A stretch of 64,000 nt of DNA from sequence record NC_061418.1; one strand, 5' to 3'. The translations under genes were made by a program, and so were the position numbers. Each line of letters starts with the position of its first letter. Positions within the stretch are counted from its first letter, which is position 1. Below are positions 449 through 58,181 of this stretch, one piece after another. Under the pieces are notes generated by a model that was given only the letters and a program-made list of their open reading frames with translations, was not told the origin of the DNA and did no database searches.

Positions 449-901
449 TTATTGACCAGCGATTAACGCGTTCTCTAACACCAAACGAAGAATCTTATCG
501 TTCAGGTCGTCACGGTTAGTGGGCGAAGTAATCCGCTTTTTACGCAGTCCTTCTGCGACCGTTCCCGTATTGAACTCGAGTGTAAGGTAGCCCACGTCTT
601 CTTTCTTGTCTTCCAGCCAACGATATTCATACTCGAATTTTCTGTCATCATACGCGACAGGGTGGCGAGAAACAATACGGTAGGTGCGGCACATCACTTT
701 ATTTTGAAGATCACTGTAGAGCTTGTAGATCTCCATTTTAGTGACTTGACCTTTGACTTCCCGGTAATTCTCTGCCGAGAGTTCCGCGATCAGTTTACCG
801 TCCTTTGCCAAGAGCAGGTTTCCGTGATGGATAGTCGCAACCATCCCGTCTTCACGGCGCTCTTGTAGACCGGCGCAGCCTGTTAGTTCAAATGTAATCA
901 C
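449..901 (-). CDS. hypothetical protein
   Basis: 150-aa ORF packed into the minus-strand operon; no recognisable motif. Confidence 0.7.
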   Translation of the reverse strand: MITFELTGCAGLQERREDGMVATIHHGNLLLAKDGKLIAELSAENYREVKGQVTKMEIYKLYSDLQNKVMCRTYRIVSRHPVAYDDRKFEYEYRWLEDKKEDVGYLTLEFNTGTVAEGLRKKRITSPTNRDDLNDKILRLVLENALIAGQ

Positions 902-3875: not shown

Positions 3876-3890
3876 CAATAACGTGATATA
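3876..3890 (-). promoter_or_regulatory. candidate early promoter TATATCACNNTATTG
   Basis: Minus-strand TATATCAC-GT-TATTG; the same motif occurs at 8726-8740 and 42271-42285; resembles the phiKZ early consensus TATATTAC. Confidence 0.6.
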
Positions 3891-3911
3891 GTTTTTAATT
3901 CAATTTGAAAC

Positions 3912-3940
3912 AAAAAAAAAGAAAGGGGCGAACCCCTCTC
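3912..3940 (-). terminator. intrinsic terminator
   Basis: AGGGG-CGAA-CCCCT stem followed on the minus strand by a T9 tract, just after the 3944 stop. Confidence 0.7.
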
Positions 3941-3943
3941 TTT

Positions 3944-4309
3944 TCAGCTGATCGGAACGATCTCGAGAAACCGTTTACTGACAGTAATACGGCTCCGTTT
4001 TCGTTTCGCCAACGCACGTTCCAGCACCGCCCGCAGTTTGATTGCTTGTAGCCGGGTTAAGTCCCAGACAATCTCTTTGCGCGTGACACATTTCCAGAAC
4101 CCCCAGTAAGCGCCCGTGGAGATACGGATGATATTGTTCTCAGAAGCGATGAGACGCTCTCTCAGCGTCGGTAATTCCAACGTCAGTAAATGACCAGGGG
4201 TTTTGATAGAGTCGGTTAGCTTGTCATTCAGCGCGTTATAGAGCGCTTTCATTTCACGGGGCTCGATAACCATATCTCGATACCCGTAAACTTGAATCTC
4301 AACGGCCAT
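3944..4309 (-). CDS. hypothetical protein, tandem paralog of 4299-4664
   Basis: Shares W.LTR.QA..L....E..LAKR...R..(V/M)S with its neighbour. Confidence 0.75.
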   Translation of the reverse strand: MAVEIQVYGYRDMVIEPREMKALYNALNDKLTDSIKTPGHLLTLELPTLRERLIASENNIIRISTGAYWGFWKCVTRKEIVWDLTRLQAIKLRAVLERALAKRKRSRITVSKRFLEIVPIS

Positions 4310-4664
4310 TTTTATTTACCGCCATCAGCTGAATTTGAGAAAAACGCACTTGGTTAAAAGACATCACCAGTCGATCAGATTGACGTTTCGCTAAGAAAGC
4401 TTCGCAACGTAACATCAAACGAAACGCCTGACTGCGAGTTAGCTTCCAGTAGTGACGATTGCCTAACCAGATCTGAAGAAGACCGTCGTCAATATCGATG
4501 ACACGGACCAGAATATCTTCGCCCTGATTTTCTTCAAGGTCAGCGGCGATAGTCGCCCGGAGCTTTTTGGCGTAGTGACGACTAAGAACCATCTTAGGGA
4601 CAATAGTATTTTCTTTTTCTTTCGCTGAGTCCCATTGTTTGGCAACGTTCTGAGTAAAGTTCAT
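4299..4664 (-). CDS. hypothetical protein, tandem paralog of 3944-4309
   Basis: 121 aa with AAGGA RBS; motif YWKLTRSQAFRLMLRCEAFLAKR. Confidence 0.75.
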   Translation of the reverse strand: MNFTQNVAKQWDSAKEKENTIVPKMVLSRHYAKKLRATIAADLEENQGEDILVRVIDIDDGLLQIWLGNRHYWKLTRSQAFRLMLRCEAFLAKRQSDRLVMSFNQVRFSQIQLMAVNKNGR

Positions 4665-4732
4665 TTTGAATTCCTTATTGGTTTAGTTAGCATAGTCCTT
4701 CGGTCAAACGACCGAAGGAAGTGTAAATAGGA

Positions 4733-5122
4733 TTAAGCGGCTTCAGCCATTTTGATACGAATTTCTGAAGGGAAATCGAAACCAACTTCTTTCCCTGGGC
4801 GCAATGCTTCCTGACGAGAAGCAACTTCGATGCGAACGTTTTTACGAATCTGAATACCAAAGCCCAGATCGGTTTTGTAACATTCGATGTCACGGTATTT
4901 ATCGTTGGTGTTTTCAATGGCGTTCAGTAACAGCCATTTGATATCACCTTTACGGTCGAAGGCAATGTCTTGCAGCTGCGCATAAAGCGGGTAGTATTCG
5001 GTTTCGAAAAGAATCTGTGCCGGAGTATCGACGAATTCAGTTTCGTGGTAAAGCGCTCTCAGTAAACCGGCGATGCGAGCAGCGGTGATAGCGAGGGTTT
5101 GTTTATCAGTGAAAGTGATCAT
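4733..5122 (-). CDS. hypothetical protein
   Basis: 129-aa ORF in the operon. Confidence 0.75.
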   Translation of the reverse strand: MITFTDKQTLAITAARIAGLLRALYHETEFVDTPAQILFETEYYPLYAQLQDIAFDRKGDIKWLLLNAIENTNDKYRDIECYKTDLGFGIQIRKNVRIEVASRQEALRPGKEVGFDFPSEIRIKMAEAA

Positions 5123-5163
5123 TTTTGGATACTCCGGTAGAATTGTTGAGGTAAAAGAATGTC

Positions 5164-5484
5164 TTAGGAAATGTTTTTAACTAACCGTTTGAAGACGCCC
5201 GCATCGATAGTGAAGCAAACGATGCTCGCGGGTTCGACGTAATGATTGGTCAGCGTGAAGATGTAGTCGTCGTAGGTTTGCAGTATCTTCAATGCCGCCT
5301 CGTAGACGCTATGGTCTGCTTTACGAACTAATACAACGGTGTTGTACGAATCCCCGGGCAGGAGAAGGCGATCGCCCAGCGCGTTGGCGTCATCGTGGGA
5401 AAAGATCAGCTCGATACTGCGGACGTCGTTTGATTCGATATCGTTCTCGAGAAAGACCACGGAGTTCATTTTTGAAAAGCGCAT
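5164..5484 (-). CDS. hypothetical protein
   Basis: 106-aa ORF with GAGG RBS. Confidence 0.75.
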   Translation of the reverse strand: MRFSKMNSVVFLENDIESNDVRSIELIFSHDDANALGDRLLLPGDSYNTVVLVRKADHSVYEAALKILQTYDDYIFTLTNHYVEPASIVCFTIDAGVFKRLVKNIS

Positions 5485-5493
5485 GTTTAACCT

Positions 5494-6171
5494 CTATTGG
5501 TTGAAAACGGAAATGAAGCGACTTACAACGCGAATACGACCTTTACCCGGACCACGTTTAATTGGGCTCGACAGCGTGAGACGATATGCTTTTATTACAT
5601 CGCCATCAAAATCTACAAAGCCAGGGGCGCTAGGTCCTTTATTTGCATAAAGACCAATGACCGGACTACCAGAAATACCATAACCATTACTTGGCTCCGT
5701 AGAAAACATAGAGTGGTTGGTGGTTTGCTCCGAAAGTCGGAGTAATGCTGCGACATCTTTATCGTTGATTGTGTCAGCGTCTTCAAAAACAACGACTTTA
5801 GAATTATCGGGTGTGCCGTAGATATCTACCTGAGGAGTATCTTCGAGACGAACTACTTCAAACGGTTCTTCTGAAAGCGTAATAATTTCTTTCAATCCAT
5901 CAATGATCGAAGACGCCGCAATAAGGGTTAACTCTTCCCCAGATGGTGTTGAATCACGAATAGAACCTCGCGTTGTTGATACAGAAATTAGCATCCTTCT
6001 CACTGCGCTATTCATTATAAACACTTCGGTTAACGGTAGGTTGTAGAACACCTCTGCGCGCTGAATCAACTGGTAAGCAATTTCAATCCGGGAAATTTCC
6101 GTGTCCTTTACAGTGTCAAACCATGCCAGAATATCTTTAGCCGTTTCTACGGTTGTTTTTAAGTCAGTCAT
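5494..6171 (-). CDS. hypothetical protein, first gene of a candidate early operon
   Basis: 225-aa ORF with GAGGA RBS, downstream of the ATGTATATATAGC motif. Confidence 0.8.
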   Translation of the reverse strand: MTDLKTTVETAKDILAWFDTVKDTEISRIEIAYQLIQRAEVFYNLPLTEVFIMNSAVRRMLISVSTTRGSIRDSTPSGEELTLIAASSIIDGLKEIITLSEEPFEVVRLEDTPQVDIYGTPDNSKVVVFEDADTINDKDVAALLRLSEQTTNHSMFSTEPSNGYGISGSPVIGLYANKGPSAPGFVDFDGDVIKAYRLTLSSPIKRGPGKGRIRVVSRFISVFNQ

Positions 6172-6229
6172 TTTCTTTTCCTCTAAGCTTAGTTATTCAG
6201 AAAGGTCTTTCCTTTCCTTCTTCACCTTG

Positions 6230-6242
6230 GCTATATATACAT
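6230..6242 (-). promoter_or_regulatory. candidate early promoter (T-tract + ATGTATATATAGC)
   Basis: Motif recurs at 27186-27198, 30114-30128, 49005-49017 and 58251-58263, each upstream of a minus-strand operon. Confidence 0.65.
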
Positions 6243-6311
6243 CAAAAAAACTGCATTTCATTCTCTTAGAAAGTTTTTATGTTACCCATTCTAATTTTGA
6301 AGGACACTGTT

Positions 6312-7565
6312 GTGGAAATCAAAAACCTTTTTGACGATCGTTTTAAGAACGTCGTTTACGATAGTCGCTTTGCCAGGGATGTCGCTGTTTTCACGAAGAC
6401 CTTCGAAAACAAAGGCGAACATGCAAACTTCTTTGGTAGCGGTCTACTCGGCACCGTCAGGATTCGTTGGACAAACACCGAAACCAACGGGTTCTTTGAT
6501 GACATTTTAAAAATCGACCCCGATGACCTGAAAGCTGACATCGACGAACTGGATTGCATCGATCCAAGTCATATCGTGACTACGGACGCCTTTAACTTGA
6601 TGATCGTCTACTGCGTCCATCGTGCGATGACCAGTGGTAAACTCTCAGCGGTACAACGAAAAGAAACCGCGATTAACCTGTTAAGAATTCTCCACTTTAA
6701 ATTCATCTGCGGGATCATCACCCGTTACTTCCCGCATGGAACAGACGTACAGATCGCACTGCGGACGTATGAGGCCATGACTAACCGCTTCGACCTCAAG
6801 ATCTACAAGACTTGGGGCAAACTCATTACGGCCCGCGCACAGTCAATTATTGAGCCTCACGGCATCCACGCGAAAACGATCCAGACCTTCACTGACGACG
6901 ACGCTGTCAAGTACATGCTCTCGGATATCCAGACCCGTATTCGAACCGTGATCAAAACGTTAACGGCGCTCTATTACCAGGTCAGAGAAAACGATGGTCG
7001 AGTTATCTCGGTCTCCAGTATGGTTGAGGTCGAGGGTAACCTCGAGCTGCGAGACGTTAAACGTGCCTTCCCGAAATACCGGCGTTACCTCTTTGAACAA
7101 ATGACTGACCCGGCTAGTTTTATACGTTTGGAGTTAGTGGATATTCTGACAAAGAATGCCCCTTCGCAGAAAAAAGCGTTAATTGCCACGTTGCAATATA
7201 CCAGCTTGCATGTCATTAACCCGGAAACGTTATTTAACACCAACCGTGGGAAAGAAGTTAAGCAGAGTAAAGAAACGCGTCAATTGGTTGAGTTTACGGA
7301 AAGAACGCTCGAATATACTTTCGACTTTATTCACGGTAAGGGAATCAACCCACGCAACCTCGTCGAGTTAATCGGCAGCATCAAAGCGGTATTGAACGCC
7401 TCCCGTAACAAAGAACCGGAGGTCATGTACCTCAGAACCGAAGGCGATAAGATTGTGCGTGCAGCCACCGGTAAACGCGAACCTACGCCAGTCTCTGCGG
7501 AACGAACATCGTTTATTCTGTATTTGATTCTGCGTACCCTGACAATGAACTACTACCAAAATTAA
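6312..7565 (+). CDS. conserved phiKZ-like virion structural protein (probably the SPN3US gp262 / phiKZ gp32-like gene near the terminase)
   Basis: Long plus-strand ORF in a minus-strand region; GTG start at 6312 after GAAGGA; position relative to terL matches phiKZ-like synteny as I recall it. Confidence 0.55.
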   Translation: MEIKNLFDDRFKNVVYDSRFARDVAVFTKTFENKGEHANFFGSGLLGTVRIRWTNTETNGFFDDILKIDPDDLKADIDELDCIDPSHIVTTDAFNLMIVYCVHRAMTSGKLSAVQRKETAINLLRILHFKFICGIITRYFPHGTDVQIALRTYEAMTNRFDLKIYKTWGKLITARAQSIIEPHGIHAKTIQTFTDDDAVKYMLSDIQTRIRTVIKTLTALYYQVRENDGRVISVSSMVEVEGNLELRDVKRAFPKYRRYLFEQMTDPASFIRLELVDILTKNAPSQKKALIATLQYTSLHVINPETLFNTNRGKEVKQSKETRQLVEFTERTLEYTFDFIHGKGINPRNLVELIGSIKAVLNASRNKEPEVMYLRTEGDKIVRAATGKREPTPVSAERTSFILYLILRTLTMNYYQN

Positions 7566-7609: not shown

Positions 7610-8656
7610 TTATAACCCGATTTGTTTCGCCAGTCGGCAATAACCACGATAGAATGCGTCGATCAGAAGATTCTCCAGAAGCGGAATGGAAGCGATACTC
7701 TGTCCAAAGACGTTGTAGTTCCAGGTGACGTGTTTGCGTACCGCACAGGTGTTCTCGGGTCGTGGGCCTTTCACCATATAGGCAATATCACCTACGCTGG
7801 AAGTTAACACCCAACGCCCCTGATCTTCCCGGTATTCGACGTCCGTGATAAAGCGATCGGTTTTAAACTCTTCTTCGCTCAACGGTGAACCGATGATATC
7901 TTCCACTGCTTTTCGCATGTAAGAATCAATCAGCGGGATTTTCTCGACGTTTCCGTCGATATGGTAACCAAACCCCTTACCGAGTATTGACCCTACGTAG
8001 AAGCCTTCACAGGTGTCTTTATCGTTGGATCGATTAATCAGCTTTAGAACAAGGTCGGTTGTGCTGTCAAAGAACAGGGCAACGTTCGGGAGAAACTGGT
8101 ATTCACCGCGGCGTTGACAAACCACTTTGTGCGCCCAGCTTAATTCGAAGTGTTCCCGCATGTACAGGATAAAATCTTCACCCAGTTGTTTCTGCCAGGT
8201 ACGGCCGTAAAAGTCACCGGTCCACGTACTCTTGTCGTCGGCCATGGTTCCGACTGCGATCGGGCGACCATTCATCAACAACGTCCGCTGCATGACATGA
8301 ATTTTAAAACGACAGTTGAGCATAAACCGTGCTCGCGCTTTCTGACCAATAAACCCTTGGAAAGCGTGTTGGATCGCCAGGAAACTAAACGGGCTTTTCG
8401 TTTCCTGAGTGAAATGATACCGCGTAGTATCGCCGCCTTCGGTAACGAAGACAAGGTGTTTCATTTCTAAGGTAGGGTTAGTGCTAAACCGTAAAACAAT
8501 ATTGTCGTCCTTGTCCGTAAAGATAAATCCGTTTTCGTTACGATAACCAAAAAGACGATCTTTTTTACTGATCTCCAAAACCCCTTCGTAGTGAAAATCA
8601 GTCCCTGTTTTCTTATCGTAAACGGTACTGTAAACAAACGTTTCTATCGTTGCCAT
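7610..8656 (-). CDS. hypothetical protein
   Basis: 348-aa ORF with AAGGAG RBS and an upstream TATATCAC motif. Confidence 0.8.
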   Translation of the reverse strand: MATIETFVYSTVYDKKTGTDFHYEGVLEISKKDRLFGYRNENGFIFTDKDDNIVLRFSTNPTLEMKHLVFVTEGGDTTRYHFTQETKSPFSFLAIQHAFQGFIGQKARARFMLNCRFKIHVMQRTLLMNGRPIAVGTMADDKSTWTGDFYGRTWQKQLGEDFILYMREHFELSWAHKVVCQRRGEYQFLPNVALFFDSTTDLVLKLINRSNDKDTCEGFYVGSILGKGFGYHIDGNVEKIPLIDSYMRKAVEDIIGSPLSEEEFKTDRFITDVEYREDQGRWVLTSSVGDIAYMVKGPRPENTCAVRKHVTWNYNVFGQSIASIPLLENLLIDAFYRGYCRLAKQIGL

Positions 8657-8725: not shown

Positions 8726-8740
8726 CAATAGAGTGATATA
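8726..8740 (-). promoter_or_regulatory. candidate early promoter TATATCACNNTATTG
   Basis: Minus-strand TATATCAC-TC-TATTG. Confidence 0.6.
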
Positions 8741-27121: not shown

Positions 27122-27185
27122 TTTACTTTACCTCTTATTGGTTTAGTTATTTGGAAAAGACTTTTTCCTTTCCTATTTCACCTTA

Positions 27186-27198
27186 GCAATATATACAT
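27186..27198 (-). promoter_or_regulatory. candidate early promoter (T-tract + ATGTATATATTGC)
   Basis: Near-identical to the 6230-6242 element, including the flanking AAATGCAGTTTTTTTGATG. Confidence 0.65.
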
Positions 27199-27262
27199 CA
27201 AAAAAACTGCATTTCGATTTATTGAAGTTTTTATGAAACATCTACCTCGGGGATTGAATACG

Positions 27263-30049: not shown

Positions 30050-30113
30050 TAATAGCACTCCAATAGGTTTAGTTATTTTATTTACGGAAAGGTTTTATCT
30101 TTCCTAAATCACT

Positions 30114-30128
30114 GTAGCTATATAGATG
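30114..30128 (-). promoter_or_regulatory. candidate early promoter variant (CATCTATATAGC)
   Basis: Same position and leader architecture as the 6230, 27186 and 49005 elements. Confidence 0.55.
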
Positions 30129-30135
30129 TTAAAAA

Positions 30136-30161
30136 AATTGGAGATGGGTTCATCTCCAATT
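30136..30161 (-). terminator. intrinsic terminator
   Basis: AATTGGAGATG-GGTT-CATCTCCAATT with a minus-strand T tract. Confidence 0.8.
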
Positions 30162-32817: not shown

Positions 32818-33553
32818 TTTCAAACTCCTTGCGGTTGTTATCATCTAAGAAAAATTCCATGGCATCACGGTACCGGTGCCAGCATTGCGTATCACGGAAA
32901 TGATAGATTTTATCAAGCTCAGTAATACGGTCAGTGACAAGTTTGTGAAGATGCGCGTAGTAACGCCCTTTCGGAAGAAACTGCGTAAAGAGATCTTTTT
33001 CCGTGAGCCAAATTTTAAGGAAGGTGACTTCTATCCCTTCAACGTCTTTTAGGTTGTCGAGGATATCTGCCAATTTCACCGCCCACGCGTCAGGGTTAGC
33101 GGAGTTAAGGAGTTTCGTCGCCTCTAACATCGTTCGGTCTTTCCGGTTCGCTTGTATGGTTTTAGTCGTATAGCGATCCGTAACCCAATCAACGAGTTTC
33201 AGTGTCTCGTCAACCAGTTGAGTGTAATTACCGTCTATGCTATCAAACGTAAACAGCATAAAACGGAGATCCTCTAAAGAGATCTCGGTATCCTCAACCA
33301 CGTCATGAAGTAGACCTGCACAGACTACGGTGATAGGGTAGTCATTTTCCTTAAGTGTTTCACTGACGGAAAACGGATGAATGTAATAAGGTTTGTTAGA
33401 CCCTTTTCTTTTTTGTCCGGTGGCAGAATGCGTTGACATCGCCACCAAATTACAAACAGAATATAATTTTCGTTCCGCTTCAGTTTTCAATCCAAAAGCC
33501 CTCTGAGTAGATTTCAATAAGGTGATATAGTCTTCAAATAAATTCCACAGCAC
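32786..33553 (-). CDS. HD-domain hydrolase, Mesh1/SpoT small alarmone hydrolase-like
   Basis: H.GQKRK..PYYIHP, AGLLHDVVEDT and VKLADILDNL motifs. Confidence 0.85.
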   Translation of the reverse strand: MLWNLFEDYITLLKSTQRAFGLKTEAERKLYSVCNLVAMSTHSATGQKRKGSNKPYYIHPFSVSETLKENDYPITVVCAGLLHDVVEDTEISLEDLRFMLFTFDSIDGNYTQLVDETLKLVDWVTDRYTTKTIQANRKDRTMLEATKLLNSANPDAWAVKLADILDNLKDVEGIEVTFLKIWLTEKDLFTQFLPKGRYYAHLHKLVTDRITELDKIYHFRDTQCWHRYRDAMEFFLDDNNRKEFENAYRINPESC

Positions 33554-48238: not shown

Positions 48239-48270
48239 TTGTCTTCTCTCTATAGGTTTAGTTGTATAAT

Positions 48271-48292
48271 TGGCAGGGGAATTCCCCTGCCA
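48271..48292 (-). promoter_or_regulatory. perfect 22-bp palindrome/hairpin preceding an AACTAAACC element
   Basis: TGGCAGGGGAATTCCCCTGCCA. Confidence 0.6.
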
Positions 48293-48305: not shown

Positions 48306-48938
48306 TTAGTTAAAGAACGGCGCCATGTTCGCACTGAATTTAATATCTTCAGCGTGTTTGAATTTGATCGTTGTAACAGTGATCGGTTCGTAGTTGGCCA
48401 TGTTAACAATCGACAGCGTTTTATCGAGGTAGATAACGTTGTCACGGATGATCATGTGGTAATGCTCACGTTCCCCGCTTTGTACTTTAGCCACTTCGTC
48501 AATGAAGATATCCGTTTCCGGATTAAAGCTGAAGTCGCTCGGCATAACTTTCACAGGGTTCTGTTCGCGATAACGCTTAATATTAACGATAACTTCTTCT
48601 ACCCCGTAGACGATAGAAAGAATATCCGTCTCTTCTTCGAAGTCTGCGAGTTCATCAGGAGTAAGAATCGTGCTGTCGAGGTATTCGCGTTTGTACGGCC
48701 AGTTGGCCAGGAATTCTGGCTCGTCGCACATCGTGGAAAACGCCTCTCTATTTTCGCAGTACATCCAAAAACGGTCGCCCGTACTCATACGAGTCTCCAC
48801 GATTAAATCTGCCGTTTCCGGGATAGAATTTTCAAAATCGAAGCGCGGCGTGAATGTGGCGAAATTCTCGGAGAGCGTGTCCGGGGTCAAATCAAAGTTA
48901 GCGTCTTTAGCGAAAACAGTAATAGTGAAAGTGGTCAT
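48306..48938 (-). CDS. hypothetical protein, first gene after an early promoter
   Basis: 210 aa; AAGGA RBS. Confidence 0.8.
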   Translation of the reverse strand: MTTFTITVFAKDANFDLTPDTLSENFATFTPRFDFENSIPETADLIVETRMSTGDRFWMYCENREAFSTMCDEPEFLANWPYKREYLDSTILTPDELADFEEETDILSIVYGVEEVIVNIKRYREQNPVKVMPSDFSFNPETDIFIDEVAKVQSGEREHYHMIIRDNVIYLDKTLSIVNMANYEPITVTTIKFKHAEDIKFSANMAPFFN

Positions 48939-49004
48939 GATATATTCCTTATTGGTTTAGTTAAAAGTATGATAAAAAGGTTATTCTTTTCCTTTATCAC
49001 TCGG

Positions 49005-49017
49005 GCAATATATACAT
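49005..49017 (-). promoter_or_regulatory. candidate early promoter (T-tract + ATGTATATATTGC)
   Basis: Same 13-mer as 27186-27198. Confidence 0.65.
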
Positions 49018-49078
49018 GAAAAAAATTGGAGATTAATCTTATGACTTTTTCACTGAACATAACCAGGTTGAATACTCT

Positions 49079-57778: not shown

Positions 57779-57809
57779 TGTATTTCTCCTTCTTCTTTTA
57801 CTGGTTTAG

Positions 57810-58181
57810 TTATTTGACTAACATTTGTAACGAGGCAATAACTGCTTTCAGTTCCTCATTACTGAGAACAAGGTAGGTCGAATCTTTTTCAAATAAGCCA
57901 TCGCGGCTCGTTGCGAAAAGATCCATGGGAATATCGGAGGAAATGTCACACGTTTTCATCTCCCCTAGGATGAAATCATTGAGTTCAACTCGTTCTTCTG
58001 AGGATCTGACTTCAATGTCAATTAAGGGTCTAAACACAAAGTCATCGCGTAGCGATTCGTATTTAACATTTAGAGCTAGATAACCCGGCTCTATTTGCCC
58101 CTCTGTCCAATCCGCTGGTCCAAATACAAAAAGTGTCCCGGAAGGTAATTTAAGAAATTCTTCTTTAGAATAAAGTTTCAT
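57810..58181 (-). CDS. hypothetical protein, first gene after an early promoter
   Basis: 123 aa; AGGAG RBS. Confidence 0.8.
   Translation of the reverse strand: MKLYSKEEFLKLPSGTLFVFGPADWTEGQIEPGYLALNVKYESLRDDFVFRPLIDIEVRSSEERVELNDFILGEMKTCDISSDIPMDLFATSRDGLFEKDSTYLVLSNEELKAVIASLQMLVK

Follow-up and report, generated by a model that had tools for sequence, protein, structure and literature searches.

A short sequence, AACTAAAC (hereafter the box), lies just 5' of the ribosome-binding sites of a few genes in Klebsiella phage KpLz-2_45, and it is a real, non-random, strand-specific element adjoining the Shine-Dalgarno (SD) sequence. Its invariance in homologous leaders of related phages argues that it is under selection there, and we tentatively favor a reading, at rather less than even likelihood, in which the box would serve a small early regulon as an operator in single-stranded RNA, placed at the 5' margin of the ribosome-binding site.

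The DNA analyzed here (the window, 64,000 nt) is 100% identical to positions 232708-296707 of KpLz-2_45 (NC_061418.1 / MN871446.1), a phiKZ-like phage of the genus Siatvirus with a genome of 296,707 bp. This genome encodes the tubulin PhuZ, several split ‘RNA polymerase beta’ genes (split multisubunit RNA polymerases) and a homologue of the nuclear shell protein, chimallin, which tblastn links to the shell proteins of Moabite, PhiEaH1 and PCH45 and whose FBKp24 orthologue is annotated as nuclear shell protein (bioRxiv 10.1101/2021.03.02.433402). Because these three features are encoded, the guess in the initial annotation that the DNA comes from a Chimalliviridae-type phage was right, and KpLz-2_45 is, judging from its gene content, a Chimalliviridae-like, nucleus-forming giant phage. 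For comparison we used the complete genomes of KpLz-2_45 and FBKp24 (the latter at ~79% identity), together with 70 kb of Centimanus and 67 kb of KpZh_1 (~96% identity). Four promoter-leader cassettes of KpLz-2_45 are called K1-K4 below, with F and C denoting their FBKp24 and Centimanus orthologues. The public RNA-labelled runs containing KpLz-2_45 are wastewater metagenomes stored as contigs.

A box adjoining the Shine-Dalgarno sequence

The 9-mer AACTAAACC has six exact copies in the whole KpLz-2_45 genome, all within the window and all on the minus strand, at exactly the positions that the initial annotation had listed: 4680-4688, 27140-27148, 30066-30074, 48255-48263, 48954-48962 and 57803-57811. 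Dinucleotide shuffles of the window predict 0.78 copies, and none of 100 shuffles reached six. The first base of every copy lies 24-33 nt 5' of a start codon. A variant that had been placed at 6187-6195 on the same strand was misplaced by one base, as those positions read TAACTAAGC and AACTAAGCT occupies 6186-6194. Counting all of these sites, the distance from the first base of the box to the ATG is 24-27 nt at six and 33 nt at 57803.

The 8-mer AACTAAAC occurs ten times genome-wide, and seven of these copies (six in the window and one at genome position 180400) are on the coding strand and begin 23-33 nt 5' of a start codon; the variant in K1, AACTAAGC, provides an eighth site with a box just 5' of a start codon. 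A genome-wide count by strand and start distance, which the initial annotation had named among the ways to check its proposal, bears out the enrichment: 6 exact copies were scored in all upstream regions against 0.99 expected from dinucleotide shuffles (maximum 4 in 300). These six are five window copies plus the one at 180400, with K2 missing from the score because the gene caller skipped the 52-aa gene that follows it. Other than Shine-Dalgarno words, AACTAAAC is the most upstream-enriched of all 8-mers. One-mismatch variants were found upstream at the chance level (18 observed, 18.2 expected). The motif is thus sharply defined, and on this ground we rejected the idea that it belongs to a larger, degenerate family. 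TAACT alone was also rejected as the signal, being 2.2-fold enriched upstream of starts as against 1.9-fold for TAACA and 2.0-fold for TAAAA. Nor does the box normally lie 5' of AATAAGG ribosome-binding sites (18 genes checked).

The box ends 3-14 nt 5' of the SD core at all but one of 14 sites. It consists of A, U and C, without G, and has a predicted mean unpaired probability of ~0.75 versus ~0.55 for the rest of the leader. Copies outside the cassettes, namely three operon-internal sites, genome position 180400 and FBKp24 position 200032, have no promoter yet adjoin an SD. FBKp24 has 16 copies of AACTAAAC, four of them in cassettes, one 12 nt before a start codon and the rest scattered in coding sequence. 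‘Recurrent’, the term used in the initial annotation, overstates the case for a general leader element, as there are 7-8 copies among ~354 genes and, of the sequences searched, those of Siatvirus and Maaswegvirus-like phages alone contained the box. A cassette-pattern scan of IMG/VR returned KpYy_2_45 and FBKp24 only, plus chance matches; a cassette scan of JGI metagenomes returned chance matches only; BLAST against phages found the cassette in this phage group only; an exact 17-mer scan gave a chance-level count; and the first 50 kb of Moabite contained the promoter type with no enrichment of the box.

Two probably coincidental matches deserve mention. The sole plus-strand AACTAAAC of the window (8383-8390) lies inside the minus-strand gene gp284, so the gp284 mRNA carries an 8-nt complement of the box; a single such copy is consistent with chance. 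Literature matches to the AACTAAAC string include alphacoronavirus papers, the string being the alphacoronavirus transcription-regulatory sequence, which we take to be a coincidence.

Promoter-leader cassettes and operon-internal copies

Four copies of the box sit in a homologous promoter-leader cassette of ~75 nt, downstream of a promoter of the T7-N-ATGTATATAT type, and three are operon-internal, both as originally described. From its 5' end, the cassette consists of a T7 run, (A/C)(T/A)(G/C)T(A/C)TATAT(A/T)GC, N4, GTGA, N3 and AGGAAAG..CTTTCC, followed by a variable spacer, (T)AACTAAAC(C), another spacer, the SD and the ATG. All four cassettes are on the minus strand. K1, before gp286 (6186-6250), has its T-run and TATATAGC promoter at 6230-6250, GTGA at 6222-6225, the hairpin at 6200-6216 and TAACTAAGCT at 6186-6195; the variant G of this box (AACTAAGC) is derived, the KpZh_1, FBKp24 and Centimanus orthologues all reading AACTAAAC. 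K2, before gp260 (27140-27206), has the promoter at 27186-27206, GTGA at 27178-27181, the hairpin at 27153-27168 and the box at 27140-27149, and a 128-nt stretch here is 100% identical in 8 Siatvirus records. In K3, before gp254 (30066-30137), the corresponding parts lie at 30117-30137, 30109-30112, 30086-30104 and 30066-30075, and in K4, before gp223 (48954-49025), at 49005-49025, 48997-49000, 48970-48999 (an extended 5' hairpin) and 48954-48963. The gp223 start codon behind K4 falls within TATATCATGA (48936-48946), a 7/8 match to the promoter core TATATCAC that is probably coincidental. The genes behind the box are ORFans, with no Pfam matches and, as their sole PHROG match, one family of unknown function. 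We rejected a conserved leader peptide, as the GUG-initiated frames differ between copies.

All four cassettes are kept at orthologous positions in FBKp24 and Centimanus (~79% identity). In an alignment of the 12 cassettes from the three lineages, the invariant columns are the T-run, TATAT, GTGA, GGAA, CTTT and AACTAA-C, the last of these invariant while the spacers on either side are unalignable and variable in length. An invariant box between unalignable spacers points to purifying selection on the box itself, and away from gene conversion or mere common ancestry. GTGA and the box are 31-38 nt apart in each of the 12 cassettes, and the interval from the box to the ATG (15-38 nt) is less constant; in F2 and C2, the orthologues of K2, a 22-nt insertion 3' of the box places it 38 nt before the ATG. 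This insertion contains the tandem duplication CTAAGAGGT CTAAGAGG, which creates two possible SDs.

The promoter of the cassettes belongs to a class of 22 sites genome-wide, all on the minus strand, with the consensus TCNA-N6-TT-N-A-N4-TATAT(C)AC-N3-A(T/G)TGAA, which the four cassettes fit and from which the box is absent. The chimallin gene of KpLz-2_45 is also preceded by a promoter of this class, and so is that of Serratia phage Moabite, a distant phage with only 35% identity in chimallin; sites within the window include 3882-3890, 8733-8740 and 33522-33529. Two reports (PMC7598289, PMC8244752) describe phiKZ early promoters as having an AT-rich box near -10 and a T-rich stretch upstream. 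Both features are present in the cassette promoter, and the apparent likeness to phiKZ-type early (virion RNA polymerase) promoters belongs to this part of the cassette, not to the box. A recurrent intrinsic terminator, GA(A/G)AGGGGTTCGCCCCTTTC plus a long T-run, lies directly before early-type promoters at ~3895-3925 (minus strand) and at genome position ~216200. The short metagenome contig Ga0079224_100928985, which may come from an unsampled relative, carries at 786-900 (minus strand) TATATAGC-N4-GTGA, a hairpin AAGGAAC..GTTCCTT, TTAACTCC, a strong SD and an ATG, a leader resembling that of the KpLz-2_45 chimallin gene (..TTTTAACTCCTAGGAG..). Late-type ‘tttc(g)TATGa’ boxes lie 24-47 nt before many structural genes, and K1, K2 and K4 each stand back-to-back with the late-type box of a divergent plus-strand gene, at 6274-6281 for gp285 (the reverse complement of CATAAAAA), at 27228-27235 for gp259 and at ~49060-49070, which accounts for the conserved region upstream of the early-type promoter in these three cassettes.

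The operon-internal copies are also on the minus strand. The copy TAACTAAACC at 4680-4689 precedes gp289 (ATG at 4664), whose SD reads AAGGA at 4672-4676, and follows a 10-bp GC-rich intercistronic hairpin without a T-run (4696-4719), 3' of the gp288 stop codon; the first 19 nt of this patch, TAACTAAACCAATAAGGAA, are identical to K4. The copy before gp224 (48255-48263) follows a 9-bp GC-rich hairpin (48271-48292) 3' of the gp223 stop codon, and the copy before gp208 (57803-57812) has no adjacent hairpin, its TAA being the gp207 stop codon. KpZh_1 and KpYy_2_45 keep all seven boxes, including that at 4680, with nearby bases changed, and KpZh_1 keeps the box at 48255 despite five flank substitutions; within Siatvirus, 1 of 56 box positions has changed versus 15 of 427 flank positions, counts too small for significance. 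Kept within Siatvirus, the three internal boxes are not conserved in FBKp24 or Centimanus. At the 4680 site these phages read caCCTAAACCAATT and CTAAACTAATT, respectively, both without a hairpin; at the 48255 site Centimanus reads TAACTAATAAGGAA after a hairpin-plus-T-run terminator where the KpLz-2_45 hairpin sits; and at the 57803 site FBKp24 reads TAACTccg and then has an extra gene. FBKp24 also has no gp223 orthologue, its cassette box and SD being joined directly to the gp224 orthologue, which looks as if gp223 had been lost by deletion between two similar box/SD patches. Centimanus keeps both orthologues with the terminator in between. The internal copies may be by-products of recombination between such similar ribosome-binding-site patches.

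Hairpins 5' of the box

Hairpin, box and SD were originally described as one leader element, and in six cases all three are present as described, with all six hairpins folding within their given ranges. The two internal hairpins are strong (-16.8 kcal/mol at 4696-4719 and -18.3 kcal/mol at 48271-48292), and the four in cassettes are weak (-3.3 to -5.1 kcal/mol). As a composite unit, however, the element is only partly real: the spacing from hairpin to box varies from 3 to 14 nt, the copy at 57803 has no hairpin, and the hairpins are of two kinds, a single conserved sequence in the cassettes and lineage-specific intercistronic structures at the internal sites. The statement that the stems vary in sequence and keep their position likewise holds in part, as the two internal stems do differ in sequence but the four cassette stems are a single homologous sequence, AGGAAAG..CTTTCC, with no compensatory changes. 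Covariation was rejected, the stem being a conserved purine/pyrimidine tract in which shifted registers pair nearly as well. In K3, K4 and F3 the hairpin extends to pair with the GUGA 5' end. An anti-SD switch is unconvincing, as the pyrimidine arm pairs with the SD in most leaders when the 5' arm is blocked, mostly weakly (-0.8 to -4 kcal/mol in 10 of 12 leaders, and -10.1 kcal/mol in F2/C2). We suggest that the cassette hairpin may be a separate module, the 5'-proximal stem-loop of the transcript, and that the two GC-rich internal hairpins would be part of the 3' end of the upstream gene.

Possible modes of action

Having no G, being mostly unpaired by prediction and standing in sense orientation between the 5' region of the transcript and the SD, the box is best read as a signal at the RNA level that targets the translation initiation region; the promoter-less copies, which still lie beside an SD, suggest the same. 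The initial annotation had preferred an RNA-level signal to a promoter box, and this is the better reading, since the box is outside the promoter consensus and predicted to be unpaired next to the SD. The roles that it went on to propose in nuclear export, ChmC binding and antitermination are speculation. Exactness and rarity favor a sequence-specific reader (a phage RNA-binding protein or nuclease) over a generic enhancer, as a sharp box fits sequence-specific recognition better than a loose A/U-rich enhancer does. In the operator model, (U)AACUAAAC(C) would act in cis, as single-stranded RNA within the 5' untranslated region, 3-14 nt 5' of the SD and at the 5' edge of the region occupied by the 30S subunit. 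The box would be bound by a sequence-specific factor acting in trans, most probably an RNA-binding protein encoded by the phage, which would set the degree or timing of ribosome loading through repression, activation or targeted cleavage. The regulon would consist of the first genes of four early-type operons and a few internal Siatvirus genes. Three observations count against the operator: the F2/C2 box, at 38 nt from the ATG, is not obviously tolerated by a steric operator; the GTGA-to-box distance is more constant than the box-to-ATG distance, which would also fit a transcription-coupled role; and the three internal copies lack conservation in FBKp24 and Centimanus.

Operators or enhancers adjoining the ribosome-binding site are a well-known kind of element in phage leaders; the box itself is lineage-restricted. 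Short single-stranded signals at the ribosome-binding sites of early mRNAs are found in phage T4, where phage proteins read the RegA operators, the RegB GGAG sites and the gene 32 operator and thereby control when these mRNAs are translated or degraded; in the gene 32 operator, a 5' structure is joined to an unstructured, A-rich run that extends to the ribosome-binding site. The box differs from the T4 operators in having no sequence similarity to them and in lying 5' of the SD, not over the AUG or SD. T4-type phages also have PeSL cassettes, mobile units of a stem-loop plus early promoter that flank variable ORFs. The KpLz-2_45 cassettes resemble them as repeated units heading small ORFans in a variable region, with gene gain or loss at the repeats (the gp223 orthologue in FBKp24), but differ in their order of promoter, hairpin and box, number only four and have no sequence relation. 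We found no earlier description of the motif in the literature searched, including parts of the phiKZ and 201phi2-1 papers, and the initial annotation had known of none; the parts searched of these transcriptome papers cover promoters, terminators and small RNAs and contain no sequence-specific 5'UTR box. A covariance-model search of Rfam 15 at the gathering score gave no matches in the whole window.

The alternative that survives best, which we nevertheless consider unlikely, is a factor-independent translational enhancer or standby site, an unstructured A/C-rich stretch 5' of the SD aiding binding of 30S or S1. Its main attraction is the parallel with the T7 gene 10 leader (63 nt), which runs from the transcription start through a 5' stem-loop, an A/U-rich spacer and the 9-nt epsilon/Enh element TTAACTTTA to the SD and ATG; KpLz-2_45-type cassettes (~55-65 nt) have a similar order and length, with GTGA, stem-loop, spacer, TAACTAAAC, SD and ATG. 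T7 Enh and the phage box are both unstructured (the latter by prediction), lie just 5' of the SD and contain TAACT; in Escherichia coli atpE, TTTTAACTGAAAC precedes the SD, and its TTTTAACTGAAACAAACTGGAG has in common with T7 and the phage box TAACT followed by A-rich sequence. The T7 element acts independently of 16S pairing and exact spacing, and its activity at altered SD distance would make the F2/C2 spacing tolerable for an enhancer (PMC8748333). The box has the position of epsilon/Enh, A/U-rich sequence of ~9 nt directly 5' of the SD, but not its sequence, matching neither TTAACTTTA nor the complement of 16S nt 458-466 and having only TAACT in common. Moreover, T7 Enh tolerates changes (PMC8748333), whereas the phage box is rare and exact over 8 nt with unenriched one-mismatch variants, unlike degenerate A/U-rich enhancers, and TAACT is not specifically enriched upstream of starts. 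The T7 element precedes the capsid gene, whereas the box precedes early ORFan genes, occurs at only 7-8 of ~354 genes and is missing from the structural genes, whose expression is presumably the highest. The box has no useful 16S rRNA complementarity (51 of 60 shuffled motifs pair equally or better), and we rejected pairing with 16S, 23S or 5S rRNA altogether, nothing exceeding shuffled controls and the best 16S duplex reaching -6.5 kcal/mol.

It is quite improbable that the box is itself without function, at certain sites or everywhere, and reflects descent of four paralogous cassettes together with short-patch recombination between ribosome-binding-site sequences. The cassettes are clearly homologous, the 4680 copy and K4 have the 19-nt identical patch, the internal boxes coincide with structural differences between lineages (hairpin insertion, presence or absence of gp223, the extra FBKp24 gene) and lack conservation in the sister lineage, and the FBKp24 deletion of the gp223 orthologue joins two such patches. 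Descent alone, however, predicts even decay, not an 8-nt island invariant in four paralogues and three to four lineages amid diverged spacers, and gene conversion would homogenize the flanks too. Neutral copying may thus suit the internal copies, not the cassettes.

Ranking next, and similarly improbable, is a short promoter element in the DNA, from which a phage RNA polymerase would initiate a few bases downstream. The cassettes would then have tandem promoters, an early one plus a second, and internal promoters would follow terminator-like hairpins, the sites at 4680 and 48255 having the usual terminator-then-promoter layout (GC-rich hairpin, 7-8 nt, box, SD) with a true terminator at the equivalent of the latter in Centimanus. 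Tandem promoters are known for phiKZ gene 54 and AR9 ‘continuous’ genes, and a short AACA-N6-T-A/G box serves as the late promoter of AR9, according to the same two reports (PMC7598289, PMC8244752); the 12th position is T in 9 of 14 copies (AACTAAACNNNT). Yet a temporal promoter class should have more than seven or eight copies, neither initiator motif of KpLz-2_45 (early-type TGA, late-type TATG) lies 3' of the box, transcripts starting 3' of the box would have 0-5 nt ahead of the SD, the box-to-ATG spacing ranges from 12 to 38 nt, and the box has AACT where AR9 requires AACA, with the downstream T at N7, not N6. Neither the AR9 (AACA-N6-T-A/G(+1)) nor the phiKZ late (TATG(+1)) non-virion RNA polymerase promoter pattern is found at the box. 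A late TATG promoter upstream of the box at 4680 (ggacTATGct) was rejected as a poor match to the T-rich late consensus, and a sigma-70 promoter was rejected because a scan of 4000-7000 for -35 and -10 hexamers at 16-18 nt spacing found 2 sites versus 4.1 by chance, none at the box or cassette core.

A DNA-level or co-transcriptional signal ~31-38 nt after the early transcript start (a nut-like loading site or roadblock operator) is the least probable reading, as the fairly constant GTGA-to-box distance (12 of 12 cassettes), the occurrence of the box in FBKp24 and Centimanus only after the hairpin in promoter-proximal leaders of operon-first genes and the antitermination suggested for 201phi2-1 (PMC11512511) are set against the lack of boxA similarity or a visible GCTCTT-type sequence, a hairpin without covariation, Siatvirus internal copies without a promoter or fixed 5'-end distance, and a phage that transcribes with its own polymerases, in which host Nus-type sites are unexpected. 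A lambda-type nut site was rejected, there being no boxA, a spacing of 3-14 nt and no compensatory changes in the hairpin.

More broadly, and returning to the operator, a sharp, selected 8-mer offers a simple handle for finding a phage RNA-binding factor; alternatively, the box could show that giant phages reuse a T7-like enhancer design, and the four compact, conserved cassettes could serve as expression parts in Klebsiella phage engineering. Restriction to one small phage group and the few copies make the general importance modest unless a factor is found. To our knowledge, post-transcriptional control in chimalliviruses is almost unexplored. It is conceivable, if on balance unlikely, that UAACUAAAC is the operator of a post-transcriptional regulon of its own, read by a phage protein on the first mRNAs from each of four early operons, with this protein deciding when or where they are translated. 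If so, UAACUAAAC could tag the earliest transcripts so that ribosomes load on them at once, before there is a phage nucleus, or its reader could alternatively silence those transcripts once the nucleus has formed.
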